Positions 10,403 through 24,598 are shown, numbered from the stretch's first letter. The stretch: DNA of 31,734 bases from Paramicrosporidium saccamoebae KSL3 (GCA_002794465.1 MTSL01000125.1:21648-53381); one strand, 5' to 3'. Notes: generated by a model from the letters alone, not told the origin. Translations and numbers: made by a program.

Positions 10403-12727
10403 CTATGGCATGCGTAGTATAACCGTCTGTCTGATGGGATCAGCAGCGATTAGGTCTAACTCTACGGGCTCGCCCAATATTAGCTGCGACGAGCCAGGAA
10501 TATCACCGTATTGACGTAACGCAAAATCTTTGATAAAGACGTGCAGTTTTCCGGTTTGTGGGCTTCTCTCAACGGGAACGACTGTCACCTTGAGAGGCAT
10601 CCATTCATTGGATTGTCCGCACAAGAGTTGTTCTATGTAGCGAATGGTCCAGAATCGTCTTGATGAGCGTTCCAGCTTTTTCAGATATTGTTCATGGCGA
10701 TACACTGTTGGAATTATTGCTTCTATATATTCGGCAGACTTTGGTTGAGTATTTGCATCTAGTGACAATGAGATTTGATGATGAAGGAGAAGATCAAAAT
10801 AGCGCCGTAGCGGACTCGTAGCCTTGACATATGATGCAAGTCCAAGTCCCCAATGTGGTCGAGGATGGATATCAACTGCGGATGCCTTGAAAAAACTCGC
10901 CAATTTTAGTCGATCATACAAGGAGGCCTCACTGCCGTTTTCTCTGACAATATCTAAAAGACGAAGAAACTCTTCACCTCCCTCTTCGCTTGGATCCAAA
11001 TGGTAGCGGAATGGAACAGAGAGTTTTCTGTCTTGCGCAAACAAAGCTGCCACTCTGCCGGCAATAACCATGCATTCTGTGACAAGAGTGCTACTCCAAT
11101 CGTCTTGGCGATCATCAAGAGTGACTTGCAACGTAGGGCCCATGGGACCTTGATTCCAGACGGTGACTTTGCTACTTGGAATATTACAATTGACAATGCC
11201 CTGTTTTTCGCGGTAACGTAAATGACCACTGATTAGGGAAGAAATATTTTTTAGCACCGTGCCCTCTAGAGTGTCGCTTTGAAGAAGCTCGTTGCACTGG
11301 TCCGGTGTGATCCGCCGGAGATGGGTAACAACGCCTTGACTCACACGGTAATCTGCAATATCTCCATCCGACCCCAATCTTGCAGAAAATGTAATGGTTC
11401 CATTGTATTTTTTCTTTGGATCAAGACTGGCTTTCATGCCAATCTCGAGTGGCAACATAAAGTAGCTATTCTGAGGTAAATACAGCGTACTCGATAGACT
11501 GCGGGCTTGTAGATCAACGACTGAATCGCATGAGATTACACGGGCGGGATCCGCTACGTGCACGTGCAGCCACACCTGGTCACCAACAGTCTGGATGGAA
11601 ATTGCATCATCCACTTCAATTGTACTCTCAGAGTCTATGGCAATGGCAAGATTGTCAAACTGCGTCCTCCCAGAAAAGACTGAAGACTCTTCAGTGTCAA
11701 TTCCGGGAAAGGAAGCTACATCATCAAATGACGTGGTGGCGGCGCTAAACCCGAGTCCACTTTGGTGTTTGGGGACGTCAATTTCTAGCAGGCGGCCCTC
11801 AAGGTTGTATTTTCTGTAAAATGATGTCAAGTCTGCTAGATTGACGAGGGGTTCAATGCCTTGGAGCACATTACTTGCAAACTGAAAGAACGGATTCCAG
11901 GCAGAGTCGTGCCACCCACATATGACTGCTTTGTCTATTAGATTTAAAATTGGTTCAAATTCTGGTTGTGTCAACACGCCATCGGTGGTTTTGGGTTTGG
12001 CCGACTGCAATGCTCTGCGGAACCTGTAAATAATGTTGGTATTCTTTTTCCAATCAGTCTTTCGAAGTTCAAGATCCAGAGCGTCATTTACAAGCTGTTT
12101 CATGTCATTTAAAAGTTTCATGTCATTGCGGCATCTCAAGAAATACGGCCCGGCAGCATATGCACTACTCTGAGCATTTCCATGTGCAGGACACTGAGGT
12201 CGATACATGGAATCGCGACCAAACTTTTCAGTGTACGAGTGGAGATACAAATGAGTGGCGTAGAGTTCCTCGGGCTTTGGAGCATTTCCAAAAACCGAAA
12301 CTGCCAAATCCGATTCGTAAAACAGACTTGCTTCGCCAAGGGGCTTTTGAATAGCGGAAGAGGCTTGCTTGGCCACAGCATCCTCTAAAGACCTATATTG
12401 CTCACTCAAAATACTTCTAGACTTGTCTTCAAATTTCTTTAACACTCGTACAGCGGTGAATCTGTCAATTCCTTCTGCGGGTTTCTCACTGAGAAGCTTT
12501 GAAGTGAAGCGAAGAAAATTGGCCTCTACACTTTTAAAGTGCCCATTGCTCTTGAGAACTTCGATTGGGTTGCTCAAGGGATCCTGTGATTTTTCTGTCG
12601 AGGTCACCAGTCCAAGCACTACATTGCCACCAAATTCCGTAAACTCGACCACATTGCCCCATTGAATAAGTGGCCTAAGCGGTACGGGCTCAGTCAATGC
12701 TCTTATCGAAAGCTGACGAACGAGCAT
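10403..12727 (-). CDS. RNase II/RNB-family exoribonuclease, likely mitochondrial degradosome Dss1-like, 774 aa, intronless
   Basis: AIDSESTIEVDDAISI (catalytic acidic motif), LHVHVADP, STLYLPQ, LVTECMVIAG, HWGLGLASYVKATSPLRRYFDLLLH; N-terminus MLVRQLSIRAL is presequence-like. Confidence 0.85.
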   Translation of the reverse strand: MLVRQLSIRALTEPVPLRPLIQWGNVVEFTEFGGNVVLGLVTSTEKSQDPLSNPIEVLKSNGHFKSVEANFLRFTSKLLSEKPAEGIDRFTAVRVLKKFEDKSRSILSEQYRSLEDAVAKQASSAIQKPLGEASLFYESDLAVSVFGNAPKPEELYATHLYLHSYTEKFGRDSMYRPQCPAHGNAQSSAYAAGPYFLRCRNDMKLLNDMKQLVNDALDLELRKTDWKKNTNIIYRFRRALQSAKPKTTDGVLTQPEFEPILNLIDKAVICGWHDSAWNPFFQFASNVLQGIEPLVNLADLTSFYRKYNLEGRLLEIDVPKHQSGLGFSAATTSFDDVASFPGIDTEESSVFSGRTQFDNLAIAIDSESTIEVDDAISIQTVGDQVWLHVHVADPARVISCDSVVDLQARSLSSTLYLPQNSYFMLPLEIGMKASLDPKKKYNGTITFSARLGSDGDIADYRVSQGVVTHLRRITPDQCNELLQSDTLEGTVLKNISSLISGHLRYREKQGIVNCNIPSSKVTVWNQGPMGPTLQVTLDDRQDDWSSTLVTECMVIAGRVAALFAQDRKLSVPFRYHLDPSEEGGEEFLRLLDIVRENGSEASLYDRLKLASFFKASAVDIHPRPHWGLGLASYVKATSPLRRYFDLLLHHQISLSLDANTQPKSAEYIEAIIPTVYRHEQYLKKLERSSRRFWTIRYIEQLLCGQSNEWMPLKVTVVPVERSPQTGKLHVFIKDFALRQYGDIPGSSQLILGEPVELDLIAADPIRQTVILRMP

Positions 12728-12907: not shown

Positions 12908-15900
12908 TTATTGGTTGGAAGACCAAGTAGGGGATTGTGATGCACTGGATTTAAACACTGGTCCCGACGATCCCTTAGTGCTGGTTCCAGCACCTGTGGT
13001 TCCTTCAGTGTTGGATCCACCAGTGCTTCCGACAGACTTGTGCGTGTATGTTTGCGAAATGAATCGAGGCTTTCCTGTGCTGCTCGTGCTGGTAAAGTCA
13101 CTTTCAGAGCCAGAGTCGTCGGTGGTTGGCACCTCGGCATATCTGGGTCCGGGTCCAACTGAGCTGGCCAGTGATTGGTCTTCTCGGCCCCGCTTTGATT
13201 TAATTTTGGCAACAAGAGCATTCATCTTTGGATATGTGACCAGAGCAATGGTCAGGATCATGGCAAAGAGCACGGCAAGGGATCGGAGTAGGAAGGTCTG
13301 TAACACACTTCCTCGGCGGTCGCCCACAGTGTAGTAGAGGGGCACCAGCATGGCGGAGAGAATGATGAAATCCAATGTCTAAAACAGAATTAAATAATCA
13401 TGTAAAGCGTACACAAAGGAACAGAAACTCGGCTTCGTCATAGGCGGTTTGAAGATTTCGTGCCAGCAGAAAGAGAATTGCACAGATTAGCAGTAAAAGA
13501 AGATTGTAGCCAACAAAGATGTATGTAGGCCAGCTGTAACTTGCAGTGGTAGAGGTGGCACAGGCAATAAAGACATAGGTGTTATCGACGGTACTCTGAG
13601 CAATGACAGCATCGGGTAGTCCTCCATCAGCGCCAAGGTATAATACCAGGCAGATCAATGAGGGGAGCATCACCAAGAAAACTACCAGCAGTAGCTCTCC
13701 ATTGTGCATAACCATTGAAACTCCTCCCGTGTTTATCAGCACACGGAAGATGCGCTGAACCTTGACAACAATGCATCTAAACGTGTCAAATTATGGCGAG
13801 TGTTTTACGCAGTGATTAGACCCATACCGATCATTCCAAGGATAGACTTGAAAATGCAGATGAAATCAGTCTGTACCAGTGTCCACATGATTAGGGACAA
13901 CAGAATTAAAATGACACCCCCGAACATTAACCATAGCCAGAGGAGATTGGTTCGACGCACCACACGACTCCTTGCAAAGGCGGTGAAAAAGATGAGAATC
14001 GCCAATGCAGCAAATATGGCAAGCCCTGCCATAATAGCCACTATGGTTGGCCAGAAGCCATTGCCGAATTGCGTGTTTTCAGGAACCAGAACGGAGACTG
14101 GATAGACAGATCCCGTCTTGAACTGGAGGAGATCGTTGGCGATAAAGGGGCCGGTAATGTTCCAAAAGCCAATCTGCTCCGTGGCGGCATTGGAGCGGTA
14201 CTGGTAAATGTCAAAGTTGGAGCGACGACGATCCGGCTGGGTGACATTAAACTGAACCGGACCGGTAAGCCCGTTCATTGAAACAAGAGACAGGGCTTTA
14301 ACGTATTCAGCAGGTGTAAATGTCTCCAAGTTGCACAGGGAGGGAACTTTGAGTTTGGCACAGCGGGTGGGGTTGAATAGTGAATCTAGGGCGTTGTACA
14401 TGATACCAACGGCATCCTGGACGTAATTAACTTGAGGCTAGCAGATTAAAAGGTACAGCTGGGTTCTTACGTCAACTGGGAGAGTGGAAAAGTCTTCATT
14501 GCCTGTGCAGCGACATTCCTCTGTACGTTCATCAATCTCTTCGGGACATGGGGGAATGGTGTCGGATGCATTGAATCGGCAGCGGAACTCACTCTCCCAA
14601 ATGTCCTGGAATTCGGGGTATGGTGCAGTGGATGGATCGACTTGAGTCATGCATGCTCGGAATTGTCCCAGCTGGCCAATCTGTGGGATAATTCCAATCG
14701 TTCCTTCGACAAAGGAGAGGGGAAAGGTAGATCCAGTTCTAGCAATGGTGTGGTTGAATGTTCCTGGCTCCTTTAGGATCGCCCATCGATCTGAAGCAAT
14801 GAATGTGAGTCTGGTGTTGGTAACGTTTCTGTACAAGAATGACAATGCATTGGCAGCATTGACTTCGTCCACTAAATAATGAGACCTTTTCCCAGATACA
14901 TACTCCATAATACTACAACCGAGGCATCGCTGCCGGCCACACAATCAGCAAAACTGGACAATCCACTGATTGAGCCAGGATTGATGCTGTTGGCGCATGT
15001 TACTTTGATGCGCTGACGTCCAGTTTGGGATAGCAGAGCAGTTCGTCCTGATGTTCCGTAAGAGTCGGTTGTGAAGAGGGCGGCGACAAAGCTCCAGCCA
15101 AACAATCTCATTACCTCTGCCATTGCGCGGGCCTGAAAATTGTCAGGTGGGATTGTTCGAAAGAAGGACGGATATGTAGTCTTGTTTGACAAGCTTACGG
15201 AGGAGGCGCCGAAGGACGTAAATGACAACATTTCTGGTCCATTGAGGTATCCAACAGCAGGGATTTGATCGTTGACAAATGGCCCGACTGTCATAAAGAC
15301 GTTGGATTGCTGCAAAAGGAATGCTTGCTGTGTTGCGGAGCTGACAAAGAAATCAGTATTTTGAATTCGATAGGTCATGAAGGATCTAGGCAAGACTCGG
15401 GAATTACTGTTGAGAATATTCAATTGGCACTTAAAGGCCTCGACATATTGGACACCTGCGAGCCAAGGTTTACCATCTTTGGTCACGGGCAATAGAGCCC
15501 CCAACTGATAACTCGTTGCGTTTGCTTCAATCTCGAGAGACTCAAAGGCAACATCCTCGGCAACAAAATTGGTGGCCTCTGGCGATGGAGTCAACGAAGA
15601 GGAGGGTGCTTCAAAGTTACCAACAGTCACGGTAGAATTGGTCTCTTCTGCCAAATTGATCGTAGTAACCTCTCCCGATCCCCCGGAACCAGAATTACCT
15701 GTAGTATTATTCGCCGATCCAGTTGCGGTGTTGGACCCAGTATTTGATCCAGTATTTGATCCAGTATTGGATCCAGTATTGGATCCAGTGTTGGACCCAG
15801 TTGCGGTGTTCGACCCAGTTGCAACATTAGACCCAGTTGCAGCGTTGGATCCGGCATCTGGTGGAACAGCACCCGATGGGGCGGCGCCTGGAGGAACGGC

Positions 15901-16557
15901 ACCTGATGGTGCAGCGCCTGGAGGAACTACGCCTGTTGGGGCGGCGCCTGGGGGAACTACGCCTGTTGGGGCGGCGCCTGGGGGAACTACGCCTGTTGGA
16001 CCAAAACCAGACGGAGCAGCACCGGGGGGAACAAGACCAGACGGAACAGCACCTGGGGGAACAAAACCAGGCGGAACAGCTCCCGATGGAACAAAACCAG
16101 GTGGAACAGCTCCCGGTAGACCAAAACCGGGCTGAGCAGCACCTGGGTTGGATCCCCCACCCAATAGCGCGTCAAGATCGTCAATGTCGCGCACTGTAAC
16201 CGTTCCAGTCACGGATGGTGGTAGTCCTTGGCCTCCTGACTCAACGGGCTGGATTACACTGGGCGGAAGGCCTTGGCCTGGAGGAGCAATAGGAAGTGCA
16301 TCCCATGCGCTCTCAAGAACCTGCGCAATTGTAGGGGGCGACTGTTTCACTTGCTCTCCCCAAAATACATTGAATATTTTTTGCCAAAAACCGACTTGAT
16401 TGTCCATCTGGCTATCCAAAACTTTGTTTGCGGGAATGGTCAGGTCATTAAGGTAGTCATCATCCAGCTCTTCTGGAATTGGCTGTTCCTTACCAGTGGC
16501 CGCAACCAGGAAGATGAAACAAAAGAGCAATAGCCACTGTAAAAGGGGACGCTCCAT
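12908..16557 (-). CDS. Class C (family 3) GPCR 'A': signal peptide, Gly/Pro-rich repeat extension, Venus-flytrap (ANF receptor) domain, 7TM_3; complement(join(12908..13378,13413..13776,13809..14437,14471..14871,14904..16557)), 1172 aa
   Basis: Four GT-AG introns (32, 33, 32, 34 nt) join five ORFs with consistent phases. VFT motifs LGALLP, LSNKTTYPSFFRTIPPDNFQARAM, FGW, DSYG, IASDRW, YVQDAV, GLTGPVQF; seven hydrophobic segments with C...G...KVQRI, ARNL...DE and YPK. Confidence 0.88.
15720..16135 (-). repeat. Coding tandem repeats in the GPCR A ectodomain: 30-bp units (PPGAAPTGVV / PPGAVPSG / PPGFVP, about 15860..16135) and 12-18 bp units (TGSN, about 15720..15850)
   Basis: Read directly from the translation and DNA, e.g. 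ggaactacgcctgttggggcggcgcctgg x3 and ccagtatt(t/g)gat repeated. Confidence 0.9.
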
Positions 16558-16710
16558 CGCTAGTCGAGAATCACTAGTCACTGCTTTCTAATCACTAATG
16601 GAATAAACGAACACTTGAATCGAGGAACGATTTTTCCCTATTAGGCAGGTACGATAACCATAAAGGGGAAATATGCCACATTGAACTTTGGGATTCCTCC
16701 CAATGCCCTG
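16558..16710. promoter_or_regulatory. Putative bidirectional promoter shared by the two class C GPCR genes
   Basis: Only 153 bp separate the two divergent ATGs (16557 minus, 16711 plus). The function is inferred from this geometry alone. Confidence 0.6.
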
Positions 16711-19528
16711 ATGCTACAATATCTAGTTGTAGTATTCGTGCTGTTTGTCTGGGCGTGCCCAGTGGATTGCCAAACGACAACCAAGAAGCTGGACTATGAC
16801 ATTGATCCCGACTACCAAAACGTGTTTGATAGTCAACAGGGCGCTGTCCCGCCGGCTACATTTGATGCTGCTCCAGAGACATTTGTTTATGGGGGGATAG
16901 TCAGTCTTTCTGACTCTAAGGGAAACCCAACCTTTTCCGGCTACGAAGATGCCTTGGCAATGCAATGCGCAATCAGCGACATTAACAAGATTGCTGCTGT
17001 CCGTGGTCCAAACACTACGTTTTACTACAACATTTTCAACGATCAAGCCAGCGCGCCTGTGGCCATGAGAGCAGCTGTAAATCTGCTCACCGGTGGTGTC
17101 CCGGTTACCGTTGGGCCCTCTGGCTCTGATTCTGGCGCTGCGGTTGCCTCGCTGTTTGCCGGATTCAACTATACTGTGCTGTCAGGTTCCACCACTGCGG
17201 ACGTTTTGTCTAATGAAGCTGTCTATGGATCATATTTCCGCACTATCCCATCCGATGCCAGCGCGGCCCAAGCCATTGGCGACGTAATGATCTACTTTAA
17301 CTGGACTTTGGTGTGTCCTGTGTACTCGGGAGACACTTATGGACTCAGCGGACAGCGACAGTTTACCAGCGTTGCCATCGAGAAGAACATTCTTGTGACA
17401 TGCGGTCGTGTCCTCCCTCCTGGCCAGATTACCGGTATCCAGAGCACCATCAACTGCCTCTCTGACAGTCAAGCATCCGTGGTTCTGCTATGGATGCCCG
17501 AGGCGCAAGCTGCCGACGTCATTGGTGCTTTTTACAATAGTTCTTTGCTCCCAGATATAACCTTTGTCGCTCCTGATTCCTGGGGGGATGTCCAAGACGT
17601 ACAAGCATTCTCTAGAGGAATGTTTGACGTATCCTATTTGGAAGGAGCCATTAGTGTCTTGCCAAAAAGAGGAGATCAATCGGCGTTCCTTGAATGTGTG
17701 TCCGAGATTCGGCCCGAAGATGAAGTTGTTCCGTTTGTTGTTGATTATTGGGAAGCAAGTTTAAGATGCATTCTATCCAACGACACGGGCATTGACCTAT
17801 GTCCAAAGAGAATTCAAGATCGATCCGCCTATCCAGATCTTAAATGTCGCTGCAACGAGGAAGATCAGCTAGGAATGCTAAACTACACCCACAAGGTGAA
17901 CTATATCTACGATGCCGTCTTTGCCGTTTACAATGCGTTTGACCAGCTGAATAATAACTGCACCAGTCTATCTGAAACTCTGGGAGAGGACGTTTGTGGC
18001 CTGGAAGAGCTGACTACGAGCGATCTTCAAAAAATCGTGTCAGTCTCAGAGTTTGAAGGCCTCACGGGCATTGTCGCATTTAACGGAAACGATCCCACCA
18101 GTACCATTGACTGTTTTGTCTCACTGTTTAGCGATTGCGTATGAAATATTCCAGCGACGAAGCGACGGATTCCTGGTGCTAATCGGGAATGATACTCCAA
18201 CAACAAATTTAACCATTGGCAGTTCGTTTGCTCAGCTCAGAATCGATGATGCCTTTGAAGCACTGAACGCGACGATTGACAGCTCCAATTTTTACTTTAA
18301 AAATGGCGAAATTCCCATTTCAGCCATTATTCCCTCGGAGATTACGTTTAGTGAAACTCTAGGAATCGTAGCTCTCGTATTTATTGTCATTGGGCTGCTC
18401 ATTTCATTCTCGCTGTCTATTTACTTTTATGTGAACAGGAACGAAAAGGTGATTAAGAAGACTAGTCCCTTTTTCTCGCAGCTCATGTTGTTTGGGATTA
18501 TCCTCTGTATTTGTTCGCAGATTTTTTGGGACGTTTCTCAGTCCACTTGGACCTGCATTGTCAAGATTTGGCTGTTGGCTATTGGGTTTGGTCTGATCAT
18601 GGGAAATTTACTGGCCAAGACGTATCGCATCTTTAAAATTTTCAACAATGCCCGTGTCACTTCGCTTGTTATTCGAGACGTCGACTTGCTCAAATTTACT
18701 GCCGCCATTATTCTTCTCGAGATTATCCTCTTGTGCTTGTACACGTTTACCACGGGCCTCCCCACACCCGTTGTTATTCAGAGTACCTCGGACAGCTTGC
18801 TGAAGATTGTCAAATGCCAAGTTCCGAGCTCCTTTGTCCAGACTGGTGGTACCATCTGGTTGCTTGGTGTCAACTTTTTACTTGTACTGGCAGCTGTAAT
18901 CATTGCATATCTGACAAGAAACGTCGACTCTGCCTTTAACGAGTCCAGGTACATTGCCTACACTGTGTACATCTATCTGCTTGTGACGATCATTCTGCTA
19001 CCTTTGTACTATACTGCTGGTGACAGTTCCAGTAGTAACAGCCGTCAATTTATCATCAGAACAATTGCAATTCTAGTTTCCATGTTCTTCACACTGGGTG
19101 CCCTTTTCGCACCCAAACTTTATCTTGTGTACAAGACCAAGAAGGGTGAGCGCAAGCTGGCCCAAGCCAGTGCAGACAAGGACCAAGGACGCCGTATTGT
19201 CGATTTCGGCAGTACCACCGCTCAAGGTGGCCCAACGACTGCCTACGCTGAAGGATCAACTGTGGGTGGAGGAGCATTTTCTCGGGCTATTCGTGGAATG
19301 GGAGGCATGACAACTACAACATCATCTGGATCTGAAAACGAGCCCACCACAGTTATGCCCGGTGGTCCGCGTATGGCTCGTAGCGGATCGGGTGGTGTGT
19401 CGGGTACTGGATCCGGAAGTGGAACAGGCACGGGTACGGGAACGGGAACAACTTCCTCACGTCCCACAGGAGTTGACTCTAACGAATATAGCAATCTCAT
19501 CAGCAGTTTGGCTAAACGCTCGAAATAG
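16711..19528 (+). CDS. Class C (family 3) GPCR 'B': signal peptide, Venus-flytrap domain, 7TM_3, Ser/Thr/Gly-rich tail; join(16711..18100,18132..19528), 928 aa
   Basis: One 31-nt intron 18101..18131. TVGPSGS, SGSTTADVLSN, YFRTIPSD, FNWT, GDTYG, APDSW, KVNYIYDAV, FEGLTGIVAF; 7TM with IKKTSPFF, TCIVKIW, LLAKTYRIFKIF, TRNVDSAFNESRYI, LFAPKLY. Confidence 0.92.
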
Positions 19529-19589: not shown

Positions 19590-19771
19590 GTTGTGAGGTA
19601 TGAGGTGTGTGGTGTGTGATGTGTGATGTGTGATGTGCACTATGGGCTGTATGTCGCAGGGTACGGATTACGGATCACACACCAACCATCATTCATCGTA
19701 CATCATGCACCACACATCATATACCATATACCACATATCATACATCATACATCATACACCACACACTACAC
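19590..19771. repeat. G/T-rich simple repeat (GTGTGAT)n followed by a C/A-rich repeat (CATCATA)n, forming a 33-bp imperfect inverted repeat (19605..19637 with 19734..19766)
   Basis: Arm 1 is gtgtgtggtgtgtgatgtgtgatgtgtgatgtg; the reverse complement of arm 2 is gtgtgtggtgtatgatgtatgatgtatgatatg. They match at 29/33 and all four differences are G:T. Confidence 0.9.
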
Positions 19772-19836
19772 TTGGTGGTTGTCATGGTGGCAGAATTTGT
19801 TTTTATATCATGTACAGTAATCTCCACCCAATTACC

Positions 19837-20559
19837 ATGAAAAAGACAAATAGAGCTCTTATCTGCAGAGTCTTTCTTGTAATTCTCGGAATCTCGGCTG
19901 TATTTGGAGCAATTCAAAGTACTTGCAAGGAGAGCGGGGATGTAGCATTGACATTTGATTTCGGTCCTGGTCCATTTACTGGCAAACTCTTGGACATTTT
20001 GTTGGAGAGAAAGATACCGGCTACTTTTCATGTCACCACGGATCTCTTCCGCAATCTAACCCTCACTGAATATGTTCGGAGAGCTCATAATGAGGGACAC
20101 ACTATTGGAATTTTTATACCAGAGTCTCCGGTCTGGGCGGCCATGGACGAGTTCCCGGAAGACGATCCCGTGTTTACCTCTGGTATTATTCAGCAAATTA
20201 CAATTGCATCCAACTGGATCACTTCCATTACAGGAACACAGCCGAGATATATTCGATTCGGAAGCAAGAAGCATATCCCTCTTCAGCTACGCAGAACCAT
20301 TGAACAGCAACTTGGACTCACAGTGACAAAGCCAAAGACGGAAATCCGTGACGAAAGCAACAAGATGGACTCTATCTGGAACTCGCTATCCAAAGGTCTA
20401 CTTAATAGCGATCCCAAAGTGAACTCTTTTATTCTAAGACAGCGCGACACTATGCCAAATTCCGTCGCCAGCGTTGAAAAGATTGTTGAATTTCTAACCG
20501 AAAAAGGATACAACATTGTACCGCTGACCACGTGCGTACCACCACGTCAGCCGAAATAA
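19837..20559 (+). CDS. Secreted NodB/CE4 polysaccharide (chitin) deacetylase homolog, probably catalytically inactive, 240 aa
   Basis: Signal peptide MKKTNRALICRVFLVILGISAVFG; VALTFDFGP, IPATFHV, AHNEGHTIG, KGYNIVPLTTC. The ORF-track start at 19630 lies in the simple repeat. Confidence 0.85.
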   Translation: MKKTNRALICRVFLVILGISAVFGAIQSTCKESGDVALTFDFGPGPFTGKLLDILLERKIPATFHVTTDLFRNLTLTEYVRRAHNEGHTIGIFIPESPVWAAMDEFPEDDPVFTSGIIQQITIASNWITSITGTQPRYIRFGSKKHIPLQLRRTIEQQLGLTVTKPKTEIRDESNKMDSIWNSLSKGLLNSDPKVNSFILRQRDTMPNSVASVEKIVEFLTEKGYNIVPLTTCVPPRQPK

Positions 20560-20982: not shown

Positions 20983-23900
20983 ATGCTTGTCAAATTCGAG
21001 TCGAAAAGCAACCGAGTTAAGGGGGTGGCGTTTCATCCAAAGCGTCCTTGGCTGCTTTCTTCACTTCACAATGGGGCGGTACAGATTTGGGATTACAGAA
21101 TGGGAACCTTGGTGGACCGTTATGACGAGCACGAGGGTAGTGGGCGTGGCAGTGTTATAACTTTTAGGACCGGTTCGTGGCTGTGCCTTTCATCCCACTC
21201 AGCCCATTTTTGTAACTGGTGGGGATGATGGAAAGATTCGCGTGTTCAATTATCAACAGCGACGTTGTCTTTTCACCCTCACTGGCCACATGGATTACAT
21301 TCGCACAGTCTTTTTCCACAACGAGGCGCCATGGATTGTGAGTTCTTCTGACGACCAAACGATTCGCGTGTGGAATTGGCAGTCTCGTGCATGTTTAGCG
21401 GTCCTTACAGGACATAGTCACTATGTCATGTGCGCCCAATTCCACCCTTCGGAGGATATGATTGTGAGTGCTTCCCTTGACCAAACCATTCGTGTCTGGG
21501 ACATTGGGTCTCTTCGTCGCAAGCACTCATCTCCGGCCACAAGTCCATACGATGACCATGGAGCGCGGGTTCCCAGTCCGAGGGCCAGTCAAATTGACTT
21601 GTTTGGTGCGCCCGAAGGCCAGGTCAAGTTTGTCTTGGAGGGCCATGACCGCGGAGTCAACTGGGTCCAGTTCCATCCATCCAAGCCAATCATTGTCTCT
21701 GGATCTGACGACCGGTCTGTCAAGCTGTGGCGCTACAATGAGACTCGTGCCTGGGAGACTGACACTTTCCGCGGCCACTTTAACAACATTTCGTGTGTCA
21801 TGTTCCATGCTCAGTCCGACTTGATTATCAGCAATTCTGAGGACAAGTCGATTCGGATTTGGGATTACACGAAGCGTGGATCCCAGCCGATTGTGCAGCG
21901 TCGCGAATCGGATCGCTTTTGGATTCTCGCCGGACATCCATCGCTCAACCTCATTGCTGCTGGCCATGACAATGGTCTGATGGTATTTAAGCTGGAACAT
22001 GAGCGTCCCTCCTATTGCGTCTTTGAAGAGAATCAGCTCTTTGTTCTCCGTGACCGAACAGTCGTTTCTGTCGACTTGAATGGCGATGAACGAGGGGCAG
22101 AAAACTCGCAAAGTCCAATTATCAATTTGGATCACAAAGTCACCCCGCCTAGCTGTTTGGTGCACAGTGTTGCAGACAATTCCTTGTTACTGTCGTCTCG
22201 AGGAGAGGCTGCCTCCTATGAATTGTTCTCAGCTCGGGGCGGCTCAAGCGACTCGTTGCGAAAGGGACCAGGCGAATCGGCCGTCTTTGTCGCTCGTAAT
22301 CGGTTTGCAGTGTTGGACGAACAGCAAGTACATATCAAAGCCCTAGATAACACTGTTTACAAAACTATTGCATGCGAAAATGCTGAGCGAATTCTGTCCT
22401 GTCCTCCTGGGTCTTTCCTTCTCGTCTCCAAAGAGGATGTGCGGCTTTATGATATCCAGCAGGACAAATTTGTCGCGGAATCCAAATTGGCTGACATTAA
22501 ATACTGCGTCTGGTCATCCGATTCCACCAGCTTAGCCTTGTTTGGCTCCCATGTTCTCTATGTTGTTGACCGTCGCACGCTGGCAGTCAAGTCTACTGTT
22601 CGGGACACGATCAACATCAAGTCTGCTGTTTGGGATGCTCGCGGAATCCTTTTTTTCACCAACTCTCACCATCTCAAATATTTGCTACCTAATGGCGATG
22701 TTGGCGTGGTTTGCACTGTTCAGGCCCCTCTCTATCTCATCCGCGTCAAGGGAGACACTATTGCAGCTCTGGATAGATCCTGTGCTGTGCATCATTTTAA
22801 AATTGATCCTACAGAATTCCTGTTCAAGCTTGCCCTTTGGCAAGGTGACCAGCCCACTATTTTGCACATGATTGAGCACGGTAACTTGATGGGTCAGTCC
22901 ATCATTTCCTATCTTCGACAGAATGGATATGCAGAAATTGCCCTCGGCTTTGTTCAAGAGCCCATTACCCGCTTTGAGCTTGGAATAGAGTGCTGCGACT
23001 TGGAGTGTGCCTACGAGGCCGCGGAAAAGATTGAGAGCGACGACATGTGGAATCGTCTCGCTGACGAGGCAATGATGATTGGAAACTTTATCCTGGCTGA
23101 AAAGTGTCTCCGTCGGGTAGGCAACCACAGTCGCCTGAGTTTCTTGCATCTTCTCACTGGAAACGTGCCCAAGCTTCAGAGTGTAACGGATGAGGTGCGA
23201 GTAAAGGGCGACTTTAATACGCGCATTCAGAATGACCTGTTCCTTGGAGATAATGTGGATCTCGCCAATGCCCTTGTTGATGCCAAAGTTCCATCGTTGG
23301 CTTATCTGGCCTGTAAAAGCTCTGGACTAGAAATTGAGGGCCAGGACATTTTGGATCGCTTCTGTCGCGACAAGAATAATGCCCATTCTCTCCCAGTTGG
23401 ACGAATTGCCCAAGTCGAGCCCCTGTTCCGCCAGTCAGAAGCATGGCCTTTGAGCGCGGATCCGGTAAAGAACAAGATTGCCTTGACCCGCAAGACACCC
23501 ATTTCCCGCAACCCCACCGCCGCCAATGACGATTTGGGCGAGTTGTTGCAAACGGCAGCCTTCCCTGCCAGTGGCGGGTGGGATCTTGAAGAGACTGGCT
23601 TGGAATTGGAATTGGACGATATTCCATCGCCTAGTGCCGATGCCGACTTTTCTAATGTTGTCGAGGATGGGTCGTGGCCGCAACCTGGGAACGCAAATAG
23701 GGACCTGCTGTCCATGGCCAGTTCTATTCCGTACCACTATTTGGCCACTGGTCAAGTAGAGAGTGCCCTTTTATTGATGAAGGAGCAATGTGGAATTGTC
23801 AACTTTGCCCCGCTCGAGTCAATGGTAATGAGATGTCTTCAGGGCAGTTCGGTGCAGATTGAGGGATTTACTCAGATCAACTTGAGCTCTATATGCCAGA

Positions 23901-24598
23901 CTGAAAAAGAGGGTCATGCGGCATCCAGACCCCGACCAGTCTTTACCTTTGAGCTGATGAAGCAGGAATTTGACGCTGCCTTGCAATTAACAACCACTGG
24001 CAAGTTTTCTGAAGCAGTCAAGCTGTTTGAAAATGTTCTCCTGTCATGCCTCTTTACGGTCGTCTCTACAGATGAAGAGGATGAGTTTTTAGAAATTAAG
24101 TCAAAGTGTCGCGAATATCTTTTGGGTCTTCGCATGGAGCACTTGAGAAAGGAGCTTCTTGGCACCGACGAGGCTCGCTCCTTGGCTCTTGCGTGCTATT
24201 TTGCCAGCTGCGATCTACGCAATGACCACCGAATTCTAGCGCTTCGATCGGCACTGACCCAGGCTTACAAGCAGCAGTGCATTGCATTGTCATGTACGCT
24301 CGCTAAACGACTACTCCAGTGCTCTCCACCCGAGGCCACTGCGCTCCAGGCCAGAAAGATTATTGGACTCGGCGAACGATTACCGCTTAACCACGCCGAT
24401 CCAATTGCCATTAGTTTGGGCGATGACAGCGCTCCCATAATCATTGACGCGAGAGACATTGTTCCTCTGGATTCAAAATACATTGAATGTCCGTTCTGTC
24501 AGGCAAAGTACCGCACCGAATACCATGCAAGTGTCTGTACCGTATGTAATGTTGCCTCTATCGGGGCAGATGGAACTGGACTTGTTTGCTGCGAATGA
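20983..24598 (+). CDS. COPA: Coatomer subunit alpha; join(20983..21136,21168..24598), 1194 aa
   Basis: [23 protein letters not shown]; intron 21137..21167 (31 nt) restores HEGPVRG; WD40 repeats, [19 protein letters not shown]-terminal CPFC...CTVC. Confidence 0.97.

Follow-up and report, generated by a model that had tools for sequence, protein, structure and literature searches.

Head-to-head class C receptor genes in Paramicrosporidium saccamoebae and its relatives: a candidate two-subunit receptor

Do two class C receptor genes that are read away from each other, with 153 bp between their start codons, encode the subunits of one receptor, or two receptors that act independently? The question is raised by the end of contig MTSL01000125.1 of Paramicrosporidium saccamoebae, a parasite of amoebae with microsporidia among its relatives; this stretch of 31,734 nucleotides is referred to below as the window. 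Two intact genes with a Venus-flytrap and a 7tm_3 domain are placed there head-to-head, gene A on the minus and gene B on the plus strand. The first-pass annotation had read them as complete and divergent, and the spliced models, the Pfam matches and the 153 bp between the ATGs (16558-16710) agree with it.

Gene models and domain architecture

The features of the locus are as follows.

12908..16557, minus strand: gene A, A-type class C GPCR, 1165 aa, four introns (spliced model, Pfam)
16557-14904, 14871-14471, 14416-13809, 13776-13413, 13378-12908, minus strand: exons of gene A, including the stop codon (spliced model)
15731..16147, minus strand: tandem repeats of 12 and 30 nt in exon 1 of A (tandem repeat scan, translation)
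14195..15441, minus strand: Venus-flytrap domain (ANF_receptor) of A, aa 373-759, split by introns 1 and 2 (Pfam E 9e-32, 111 bits)
13226..14053, minus strand: 7tm_3 domain of A, aa 807-1060, split by introns 3 and 4 (Pfam E 7e-28, 98 bits)
16558..16710, no strand: spacer between the ATGs of A and B, 153 bp, which must house both promoters and both 5' UTRs (sequence)
16711..19528, plus strand: gene B, B-type class C GPCR, 928 aa, one intron (spliced model, Pfam)
16711-18100, 18132-19528, plus strand: exons of gene B, including the stop codon (spliced model)
18101-18131, plus strand: intron of gene B, 31 nt (spliced model)
16951..18154, plus strand: Venus-flytrap domain (ANF_receptor) of B, aa 81-471 (Pfam E 3e-39, 135 bits)
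18344..19117, plus strand: 7tm_3 domain of B, aa 535-792 (Pfam E 8e-51, 174 bits)

The introns of gene A measure 32, 54, 32 and 34 nt, and all four are of the GT..AG type. Our model of gene B shares 97% identity with the NCBI protein P0001, which is spliced differently. Both proteins span nearly the whole 7tm_3 profile (PF00003, cutoff 33.5 bits). The two 7TM cysteines (C551 and C638 in B core numbering) are invariant across 8 sequences, so that the TM3-ECL2 pair feature is present, and the alignment places a TM3 Lys and a TM6 Glu in both A and B, which we take, by reference to mGluR structures, to be 3.50 and 6.35. Judged by the 7tm_3 domain, the flytrap, the Cys pair and the Lys and Glu, A and B are class C (Glutamate-family) GPCRs. 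Gene B further carries the conserved motifs K-T-x-R-I (TM3), NE(S/A)(R/K) (TM6) and PKxY (TM7). Pfam gives no NCD3G match (PF07562) in A or B, and the linker between flytrap and 7TM is free of cysteines, in agreement with published reports, where this domain is given as absent outside animals.

The two proteins differ most at their N-termini. The repeats in exon 1 of A encode (GSNT)n and a Pro/Gly-rich low-complexity extension, ~350 aa before the flytrap. An extension of 170-350 aa is found in every A-type ortholog, as against 60-81 aa in B-type ones. A single-chain structure model of A is poor (pLDDT 51). The C-terminal tails are rich in Ser, Thr and Gly and carry short conserved motifs (KPxFxSQT in A; RR[IV]V and EYxxL in B; KKXX in B1); inspection of the tails of A and B by eye revealed no coiled-coil or heptad pattern.

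A and B share 30% identity over 828 aa (E 5e-96), which upholds their earlier description as old paralogs of low identity; by sequence they are ancient class C receptor paralogs. Four introns against one, at non-matching positions, had been counted as a further sign of age. The count is literally true of this genome. Six A-type orthologs share the intron of B (alignment column 927, phase 1), and orthologs of both types have a phase-0 intron near A683-694/B392-409. The mismatch in P. saccamoebae thus reflects differential intron loss.

Recurrence of the pair and its spacer

A search for synteny found the head-to-head arrangement in eight or more related environmental genomes or lineages. The pair is seen in P. 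saccamoebae, in L002, L003 and L004, in L006/L007, in L008-L010, in L011 and in L013. Identity of the relatives to the window genes is 39-66% for A (46-66% with its orthologs) and 40-72% for B. Both types are present on every contig long enough to show both. Two pairs each are carried by L002, L003 and L004 (all 12 genes intact, dN/dS 0.02-0.11 in both domains), and the duplication gave two A and two B genes together. The A tree has the form ((Psac,L006),L008),((A1x3),(A2x3)). The B tree mirrors it, and both duplication nodes have bootstrap values of 96-100%; the pair was duplicated en bloc in one single event. The trees are by neighbour-joining only, and the deep A-type and B-type superclades are supported at 71-79%.

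The neighbours of the pair are conserved as well.

10403..12727, minus strand: RNB-domain exoribonuclease gene, conserved flank on the A side (Pfam; synteny in L002-L004, L006 and L008)
19630..20559, plus strand: polysaccharide deacetylase gene, conserved flank on the B side (Pfam, synteny); the deposited model begins at 19837
21242..24598, plus strand: COPI coatomer alpha subunit (COPA) gene, downstream of B (Pfam, tblastn, gene context)

In the relatives the RNB, deacetylase, COPA and Tmrp11_N-domain genes are found in unchanged order and orientation, and the adjacency of B to COPA is also maintained in L011 and Amphiamblys. Since the flanks are syntenic too, the conserved arrangement of A and B may only reflect slow rearrangement. 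This is the ground of a possible, if rather doubtful, reading in which A and B are independent homodimeric receptors for different ligands, which arose by inverted tandem duplication and kept their layout in slowly rearranging compact genomes, the shared spacer being a consequence of packing and not a device for stoichiometric co-expression. Short spacers are indeed the norm in the window: by the gene calls neighbouring spacers measure ~180-730 bp, so that 153 bp is not unusual here. Of the sequences that entered the tree, one A-type and one B-type gene come from Mitosporidium, and one of each from a probable metchnikovellid (within a Polyrhabdina transcriptome), a co-occurrence that speaks for a two-subunit receptor. 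The two types can also lie apart. In Mitosporidium they are on different contigs, the upstream neighbour of the Amphiamblys B-type gene is a kinase gene and no receptor gene, and a chromo-domain gene lies opposite the A-type gene P0009. From Mitosporidium and Amphiamblys it follows that linkage is unnecessary for both types to persist. Independent homodimers sit less easily with the retention of both members of both duplicated pairs in three species, and with the conserved centre of the spacer in the relatives.

The homologous spacers of the relatives are 98-209 bp long, and at their centre sits an element of the form TTCC-N6-GGAAATAT. The exact motif occurs only in the pair spacers of L002-L004, where the central ~55 nt are 85-100% invariant in the three species, as compared with 25% for introns. 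With at most one mismatch, GGAAATAT is found in six of seven spacers, a result reached by 7 of 200 shuffles, which points weakly to an element shared across lineages. The copy in P. saccamoebae is the following.

16630..16648, minus strand: CTGCCTAATAGGGAAAAAT, degenerate copy of the TTCC-N6-GGAAATAT element, with two mismatches and not significant alone

The comparison makes the element clade-specific, with a degenerate form in P. saccamoebae. Across the Paramicrosporidium clade, the spacer of 100-200 bp would be a shared bidirectional promoter region that delivers both subunits together.

Reciprocal constraint and the ligand pocket

Constraint was taken as mean pairwise identity in matched sets of nine A-type and nine B-type genes, and it is reciprocal, with the flytrap more conserved in A and the 7TM in B. 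The flytrap identity is 0.684 in A and 0.572 in B (p=3e-8; 0.714 versus 0.501 in the C-terminal half), while that of the 7TM is 0.611 and 0.757 (p=4e-11). The domain-by-gene interaction has p=1.5e-17. The contrast between A and B is found in TM3 (0.70 versus 0.95), ICL2 (0.62 versus 0.93) and ICL3 (0.78 versus 0.95), regions that are nearly invariant in the nine B-type genes. At short range (L002 versus L003/L004) the reciprocal constraint is clear for pair 1 (A1/B1) only and not for pair 2.

The pocket residues behave in a similar way. The nine A-type genes show no variation at the positions equivalent to mGluR1 D208, Y236 and D318, and the T188 position is conserved in them as Ser. In B-type genes the acidic equivalent of mGluR1 D318 and CaSR E297 has become T, A or S in six of nine, and two B1 copies have C or L at the Y236 position, which is invariant in A; pocket residues are lost in B-type copies only. 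The S165 equivalent varies among the A-type genes (N/S/D) and among the B-type genes (S/A). The B protein of P. saccamoebae retains the equivalents of T188, D208, Y236 and D318, so it may bind ligand there.

The long extension and the more constrained flytrap make A the presumed main ligand-sensing subunit, and the canonical 7TM with almost invariant intracellular loops makes B the presumed coupling subunit, acting on a downstream transducer that would probably be a heterotrimeric G protein. Protein evolution suggests, and does not prove, that A senses ligand and B signals, as in animal GABA-B. Reciprocal constraint could arise in two independent receptors too. Its high significance nevertheless speaks against independent homodimers, as does the loss of the acidic residue that contacts the alpha-amino group in six of nine B-type genes alongside nearly invariant B loops; on the other side, both A and B of P. 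saccamoebae keep K3.50, E6.35 and most pocket residues.

Among solved structures in the PDB, mGluR4, CaSR and mGluR2 match best. The 7TM of B matches the solved 7TM domains of mGluRs and CaSR, whereas A matches the PDB through a flytrap stretch only. The flytrap matches are to those of CaSR and mGluRs. The match to GABA-B2 is confined to the 7TM of B (1e-27, as against 1e-37 for mGluR4). That the nearest solved relatives are mGluRs and CaSR, which function as homodimers, again fits independent homodimers. The matches also include the heterodimeric mGlu2/mGlu4 and mGlu2/mGlu3 entries, which, together with the mGluRs being the nearest relatives, would suit a facultative pairing of the mGlu2/4 kind, with functional homodimers and with heterodimers of distinct pharmacology, the linkage only ensuring production at the same stage. 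A and B each look competent in P. saccamoebae, and the asymmetry is graded and not absolute, with pair 1 showing more of it than pair 2. We consider facultative pairing improbable: important pocket positions are lost from the B1 and B2 copies, an argument that in that clade, at least, they depend on a partner, and A has a 7TM that departs markedly further from the canonical form than B's does.

Taken as features of sequence, the kept arrangement, the en-bloc duplication, the mirrored trees, the reciprocal constraint, the pocket loss confined to B and the core of the spacer support a functional coupling of A and B. The first-pass view of a co-regulated two-subunit sensor is therefore sustained in part, in the coupling of the two genes, and not by the spacer motif of P. 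saccamoebae, which lacks significance. The odds that A and B work together as a two-subunit receptor appear about even, which makes this the likeliest of the readings considered.

The receptor repertoire and comparison with known systems

The possibility, raised in the first pass, that this is one pair among many unlinked copies finds no counterpart in a survey of 1357 genomes, the table of which lists for P. saccamoebae one GPCR of 17 classes, in class 16 (Glutamate), and for Amphiamblys two, both of class 16 (PMC12842992). Since the deposited model of gene A has no Pfam match, the P. saccamoebae receptor in the table must presumably be gene B. The A/B pair is thus probably the entire GPCR repertoire of P. 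saccamoebae, with A apparently missed by the survey. The retention of both types as the apparent sole GPCRs in strongly reduced genomes is a further point against independent homodimers.

The presence of class C receptors in early-diverging fungi is well documented and not new. The class had been described as absent from Dikarya and canonical microsporidia and as patchy in zoosporic fungi and Dictyostelium; in both surveys the absence stands (PMC3251606, PMC12842992), and the rarity does not, with 96 sequences reported from early-diverging fungi in 2012 (Krishnan et al. 2012, PMC3251606) and 918 in 2025 (J Fungi 2025, PMC12842992). The 2025 table already has counts for P. saccamoebae, Amphiamblys, Mitosporidium and Rozella (J Fungi 2025, PMC12842992), and gene B already bears the annotation 'GPCR, family 3'. 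The accessible portions of PMC3251606 and PMC12842992 make no mention of the A-type/B-type split, the head-to-head pair, the en-bloc duplication or the reciprocal constraint, and receptors, G proteins and signalling go unmentioned in the P. saccamoebae genome paper. Of the supposed novelty of the locus, what remains is the pair: its recurring head-to-head arrangement, the en-bloc duplication, the mirrored trees, the likely two-GPCR repertoire and the reciprocal constraint are apparently new.

A bolder reading, to which we assign a probability of roughly 0.35, is that the lineage leading towards microsporidia cut its GPCRs to one obligate heterodimer resembling GABA-B, with an origin outside animals, with A binding and B coupling, and that in Paramicrosporidium it is wired by a bidirectional promoter as the sole G-protein-coupled sensor of environment or host. 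For this pair, physical heterodimerisation, a division of labour, co-expression, G-protein coupling and any part in detecting the host or germination cues are inferred.

The class 16 GPCRs of early-diverging fungi resemble A and B in combining ANF_receptor and 7tm_3 without NCD3G; in their available text the surveys give counts and domains only, unlike the present analysis of the pair. The mGluR, CaSR and T1R receptors provide the best solved-structure matches for both domains, and the equivalents of T188, D208, Y236 and D318 in the pocket and the TM3, TM6 and TM7 motifs in B are conserved. A and B differ from them by having no cysteine-rich NCD3G domain, by the S165/S147 equivalent (a contact of the ligand carboxylate), conserved in neither, and by the 170-350 aa extension of A. 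T1Rs are heterodimers with a shared subunit.

With the divergent histone pairs of fungi (H2A-H2B and H3-H4) the locus has in common the head-to-head layout, the short shared spacer, the central spacer element conserved in relatives and the duplication of the pair as a unit. It differs in that the A/B pair is known from sequence alone and that its spacer element is restricted to a clade, with a degenerate copy in P. saccamoebae.

GABA-B is the system with which the proposed receptor is best compared. A and B are nearer to mGluR and CaSR by sequence and fall outside the GABA-B clade, their tails have no coiled-coil evident by eye, and the B protein of P. saccamoebae still has its pocket residues. 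The A and B genes are paired head-to-head, whereas to our knowledge the animal GB1 and GB2 genes are not physically paired in this way, and the heterodimer proposed here is a candidate known from its genes. In both cases there are two unequal class C subunits in which the flytrap is joined to the 7TM with no cysteine-rich domain. GB1 binds GABA and GB2 couples to the G protein; correspondingly, the ligand pocket appears conserved in one subunit (A) and the presumed G-protein-facing surface in the other (B), and the B-type copies lose pocket residues, like GB2.

Gene models of the two receptors

Paramicrosporidium saccamoebae lives as a parasite inside the nuclei of amoebae; it is placed in the Rozellomycota and related to microsporidia (PMC5701793). 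The window covers the final 31.7 kb of its contig MTSL01000125.1 (assembly GCA_002794465.1). The two receptor genes, A and B, were rebuilt by hand, by joining open reading frame fragments at GT..AG boundaries. The features are as follows.

16557-12908, minus strand: gene A, 5 exons, introns of 32, 54, 32 and 34 nt, 1165 aa
15731-16147: tandem 12-nt and 30-nt repeats, encoding the (GSNT)n and Pro/Gly-decapeptide N-terminal extension of A
16711-19528, plus strand: gene B, 2 exons, 31-nt intron at 18101-18131, 928 aa
21242-24598: COPI coatomer alpha (COPA), a large WD40 gene (5372-6223 in the relative contig L011, 10489-13692 in the Amphiamblys contig L015)

The first-pass annotation described a head-to-head pair of Venus-flytrap plus 7TM_3 genes that are old paralogs of low identity, and proposed a domain search; the rebuilt models agree on each point. 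The start codons are 153 bp apart, both proteins carry the Pfam domains ANF_receptor and 7tm_3 well over the curated cutoffs, and A and B are 30% identical across 828 aa. No NCD3G domain was found by Pfam in either protein. In the database record for B (906 aa, named "GPCR, family 3 domain-containing protein"), the 31-nt intron is treated as coding and a longer stretch after it is spliced out (window 18101-18240), so that the segment TIAYEIFQRRSDG..., which all relatives conserve, is lost. The deposited model of A (window 12908-16557) has 1065 aa and no Pfam match on record.

A low-complexity stretch of ~350 residues, Pro/Gly-rich and (GSNT)n, precedes the flytrap domain of A. A long N-terminal extension (170-350 aa) is present in every A-type ortholog, and its sequence is not conserved. 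The introns in the window (13379-14903 and 18101-18131) are very short (31, 32, 32, 34 and 54 nt); in the same genes of environmental relatives they measure 32-90 nt. The C-terminal tail of the A-type proteins (window 12908-13200) contains an acidic Ser cluster followed by KPxFxSQT and a distal RRS, and that of the B-type proteins (window 19140-19528) contains RR[IV]V, PGGPR and a near-terminal, sorting-like (E/D)YxxL motif. An AlphaFold2 model of the A core, calculated from a 4-sequence alignment, has a mean pLDDT of 51 and a pTM of 0.33.

The pair and its spacer in related genomes

Homologs were searched with trimmed cores, since the low-complexity tail of full-length B filled the list with unwanted matches. 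Profile searches gave many environmental relatives, whose genes had been called as fragments owing to their introns. Their contigs were then fetched, and the genes were modeled with a protein-to-genome aligner of our own, which uses dynamic programming and was validated on gene B. All 16 environmental genes modeled have intact reading frames and a consistent exon structure.

The A/B pair recurs in these genomes, which answers the call of the first-pass annotation for a synteny comparison. Contigs L002, L003 and L004 each contain two head-to-head pairs, as against one in P. saccamoebae, in the order COPA, deacetylase, [B-type <-> A-type], [B-type <-> A-type], RNB exonuclease, with a Tmrp11_N-domain gene beyond the exonuclease where the contig extends far enough. 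A single pair with the same flanks is found in L006/L007 and L008-L010, and the A-type and B-type genes of L013 and the more divergent L011 are also arranged head to head. The start-to-start spacers of the pairs measure 98-209 bp. Between the two pairs, no more than ~45-90 bp separate the stop codons of the convergent genes A1 and B2 (L002 12450-12523; L003 12974-13064; L004 6835-6880), so the duplicated units abut almost without a spacer. The WD40 gene downstream of B has precomputed matches to IFT122; we rejected its assignment as an IFT protein, as it encodes COPI alpha.

Neighbour-joining trees, with bootstrap counted on unrooted bipartitions, show the same topology for both types: ((P. 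saccamoebae, L006), L008) and ((copy 1 x3), (copy 2 x3)), with 96-100% bootstrap for the duplication nodes in both trees. Because the trees mirror each other with this support, a single event duplicated the whole pair, later than the divergence from P. saccamoebae. All four duplicated genes are kept in three species, under strong purifying selection in both domains (dN/dS 0.02-0.11 in all four genes). The B1 copies of L002-L004 terminate in KKXX, resembling an ER-retrieval signal.

The overall identity of the spacers, paralogous or orthologous, is that of the intron background (about 55%). In L002-L004, at a distance where dS is already ~0.8-3, the central ~55 nt of both spacers are 85-100% invariant across the three species; the corresponding values are 25% in introns and 25-45% in the flanks of the spacers. 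The two paralogous spacers have in common TTCC-N6-GGAAATAT, GCAAT and ATATTAAT, and the exact TTCC-N6-GGAAATAT occurs nowhere else in those 59 kb. With at most one mismatch, GGAAATAT is present in the spacers of 6 of 7 lineages, a level reached by 7 of 200 shuffles in a k-mer sharing test. In P. saccamoebae the copy (16630-16648) departs from the motif at two positions and by itself does not reach significance; for this reason a shared regulatory element, well supported by sequence conservation in the L002-L004 clade, is only suggested in P. saccamoebae. The palindrome TTCC-N6-GGAA is absent from the spacers of L006, L008, L011 and L013 and was rejected as a general element of the pair.

Age of the A/B split and the receptor repertoire

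An exhaustive profile search gave 14,544 relatives at E<=1e-3 and 754 at E<=1e-30, the named ones including Rozella allomycis EPZ31654.1, Amphiamblys sp. OIR58834.1, two Mitosporidium daphniae proteins and two chytrid proteins. Two complete reading frames, P0048 and P0055, one A-type and one B-type, come from the transcriptome GHVP01, which is that of the gregarine Polyrhabdina sp. (PMC10304595). The B-type frame and the Amphiamblys receptor form sister branches (100% support), which points to a metchnikovellid as the probable source of both frames. Polyrhabdina is a host of the hyperparasite Metchnikovella. If this origin is correct, both receptor types are transcribed there.

By neighbour-joining, A groups with P0007, P0009, P0046, one GHVP01 frame and one Mitosporidium protein (79%), and B with Amphiamblys, the other GHVP01 frame and the other Mitosporidium protein (71%); the Rozella and chytrid receptors fall outside both superclades. 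On these trees the A/B split dates far back in this lineage, and one receptor of each type persists in several reduced parasites. A phase-1 intron at A750/B464, which is the 31-nt intron of B, occurs in all B-type and six A-type genes, and a phase-0 intron near A683-694/B392-409 is also common to both types, in agreement with an origin by duplication at the DNA level. Thus the non-matching intron positions noted at first pass are correct for P. saccamoebae, but they reflect differential loss, since the orthologs share positions.

The A/B linkage is not universal. The A-type and B-type genes of Mitosporidium lie on different contigs, and the Rozella gene has no receptor neighbour. The intronless A-type gene of P0009 (850 aa, compact genome) lies 166 bp from a chromo-domain gene, in head-to-head orientation (L005 79-3082). 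In Amphiamblys sp. WSBS2006 (L015, MKPU01000009.1, 6935-10427), the B-type gene is divergent from a protein kinase gene; it is followed by COPA, which makes this receptor gene the positional counterpart of B. In both L011 and Amphiamblys, COPA comes after the B-type receptor with no deacetylase between them. Amphiamblys is an early-branching microsporidian. In other organisms, several class C genes share one contig (P0059/P0078/P0082/P0086 on 41.8 kb; P0056/P0067 on 17.6 kb).

The presence of class C receptors in this lineage is already known, and the family is well documented in early-diverging fungi. The relevant passages of a 2012 survey report 96 class C (Glutamate-family) receptors in four such fungi, all without NCD3G, and none in Dikarya (PMC3251606); those of a 2025 survey report 918 across 1357 genomes, with enrichment in chytrids and blastoclads and absence from canonical microsporidia (PMC12842992). 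The table of the latter lists one GPCR, of class 16, for P. saccamoebae, two for Amphiamblys (both class 16, no other), three of class 16 and one other for Mitosporidium, and five of class 16 among eight in Rozella (PMC12842992). With one class 16 entry for P. saccamoebae, gene A seems to have been overlooked in that count, and A and B are probably the whole GPCR repertoire of the species. The same tabulated entry argues against the possibility, raised at first pass, that the pair is an arbitrary one among the many copies of a large expansion. Literature searches gave nothing relevant on GPCRs in Paramicrosporidium or Amphiamblys, or on GPCR heterodimers from a bidirectional promoter. The novelty first claimed for the locus does not extend to the family, in view of the two surveys, but a conserved A/B pair, duplicated as a unit and reciprocally constrained, has apparently not been described before.

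Reciprocal constraint and relation to known class C receptors

Constraint was calculated as the per-column mean pairwise identity in nine matched A-type and nine B-type genes.

Constraint by region (mean pairwise identity, Wilcoxon p)
Region; A-type; B-type; p
Flytrap domain; 0.684; 0.572; 3e-8
Flytrap, C-terminal half; 0.714; 0.501; 2.5e-9
7TM domain; 0.611; 0.757; 4e-11
TM3; 0.70; 0.95; 0.00096
ICL2; 0.62; 0.93; 0.0047
ICL3; 0.78; 0.95; 0.12

The domain-by-gene interaction is significant at p=1.5e-17 (nine A-type, nine B-type). Pocket positions, taken to be the amino acid ligand contacts of mGluR1 and CaSR, were assigned from the structures of those receptors and from alignments. At the position of D318/E297, the A-type proteins have Asp (9/9), and the six B1 and B2 copies all have Thr, Ala or Ser. 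At that of Y236, the A-type shows no variation, and two B1 copies have Cys or Leu. The D208 equivalent is universal, and that of S165 is variable in both types. The 7TM domain of B is canonical (174 bits to 7tm_3), with AKTYRIF in TM3, TRNVDSAFNESRYI at ICL3-TM6 and PKLY in TM7, and it matches the solved 7TM domains of mGluR, CaSR and GABA-B2. The 7TM domain of A (98 bits to 7tm_3) has diverged so far that a single-sequence search matches it to none of the solved structures.

The pattern of constraint and pocket residues is as expected if A senses and B transduces, as in GB1/GB2, where one subunit is the sensor and the other the transducer. On these sequence comparisons, we give roughly even odds (about 0.5) to A and B being a two-subunit class C receptor with a GABA-B-like division of labour, in which A would be the main sensor and B the transducer, both expressed from the shared spacer. 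Independent receptors could in principle give the same constraint pattern, P. saccamoebae B still has its pocket residues, and at short evolutionary distances only pair 1 (A1/B1) shows a clear asymmetry. The main alternative, which we consider less probable, is that A and B are two separate homodimeric receptors linked by history; the locus would then be an ordinary, if tidy, example of conserved synteny.

An obligate heteromer would mean that the sensing/signalling split of GABA-B has a non-animal counterpart, convergent or very old, with a bearing on the evolution of asymmetric class C dimers. It would also offer a minimal, tractable system for class C activation, apparently with two receptor genes and no other GPCR, and a candidate sensor of location for an intranuclear amoeba parasite, perhaps for early-branching microsporidia too. 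The conserved spacer would then be a defined place to search for promoter elements, in a group whose promoters have hardly been characterised.

The label "GABA-B homologs" was rejected, given the affinity of A and B to mGluR and CaSR and the position of the Rozella and chytrid receptors outside the A/B split. The proposed division between sensing and signalling resembles GABA-B, but by sequence A and B fall outside the GABA-B clade. Their sequence affinity is to mGluR and CaSR, although A and B differ from the mGluR/CaSR/T1R receptors in having no cysteine-rich domain.
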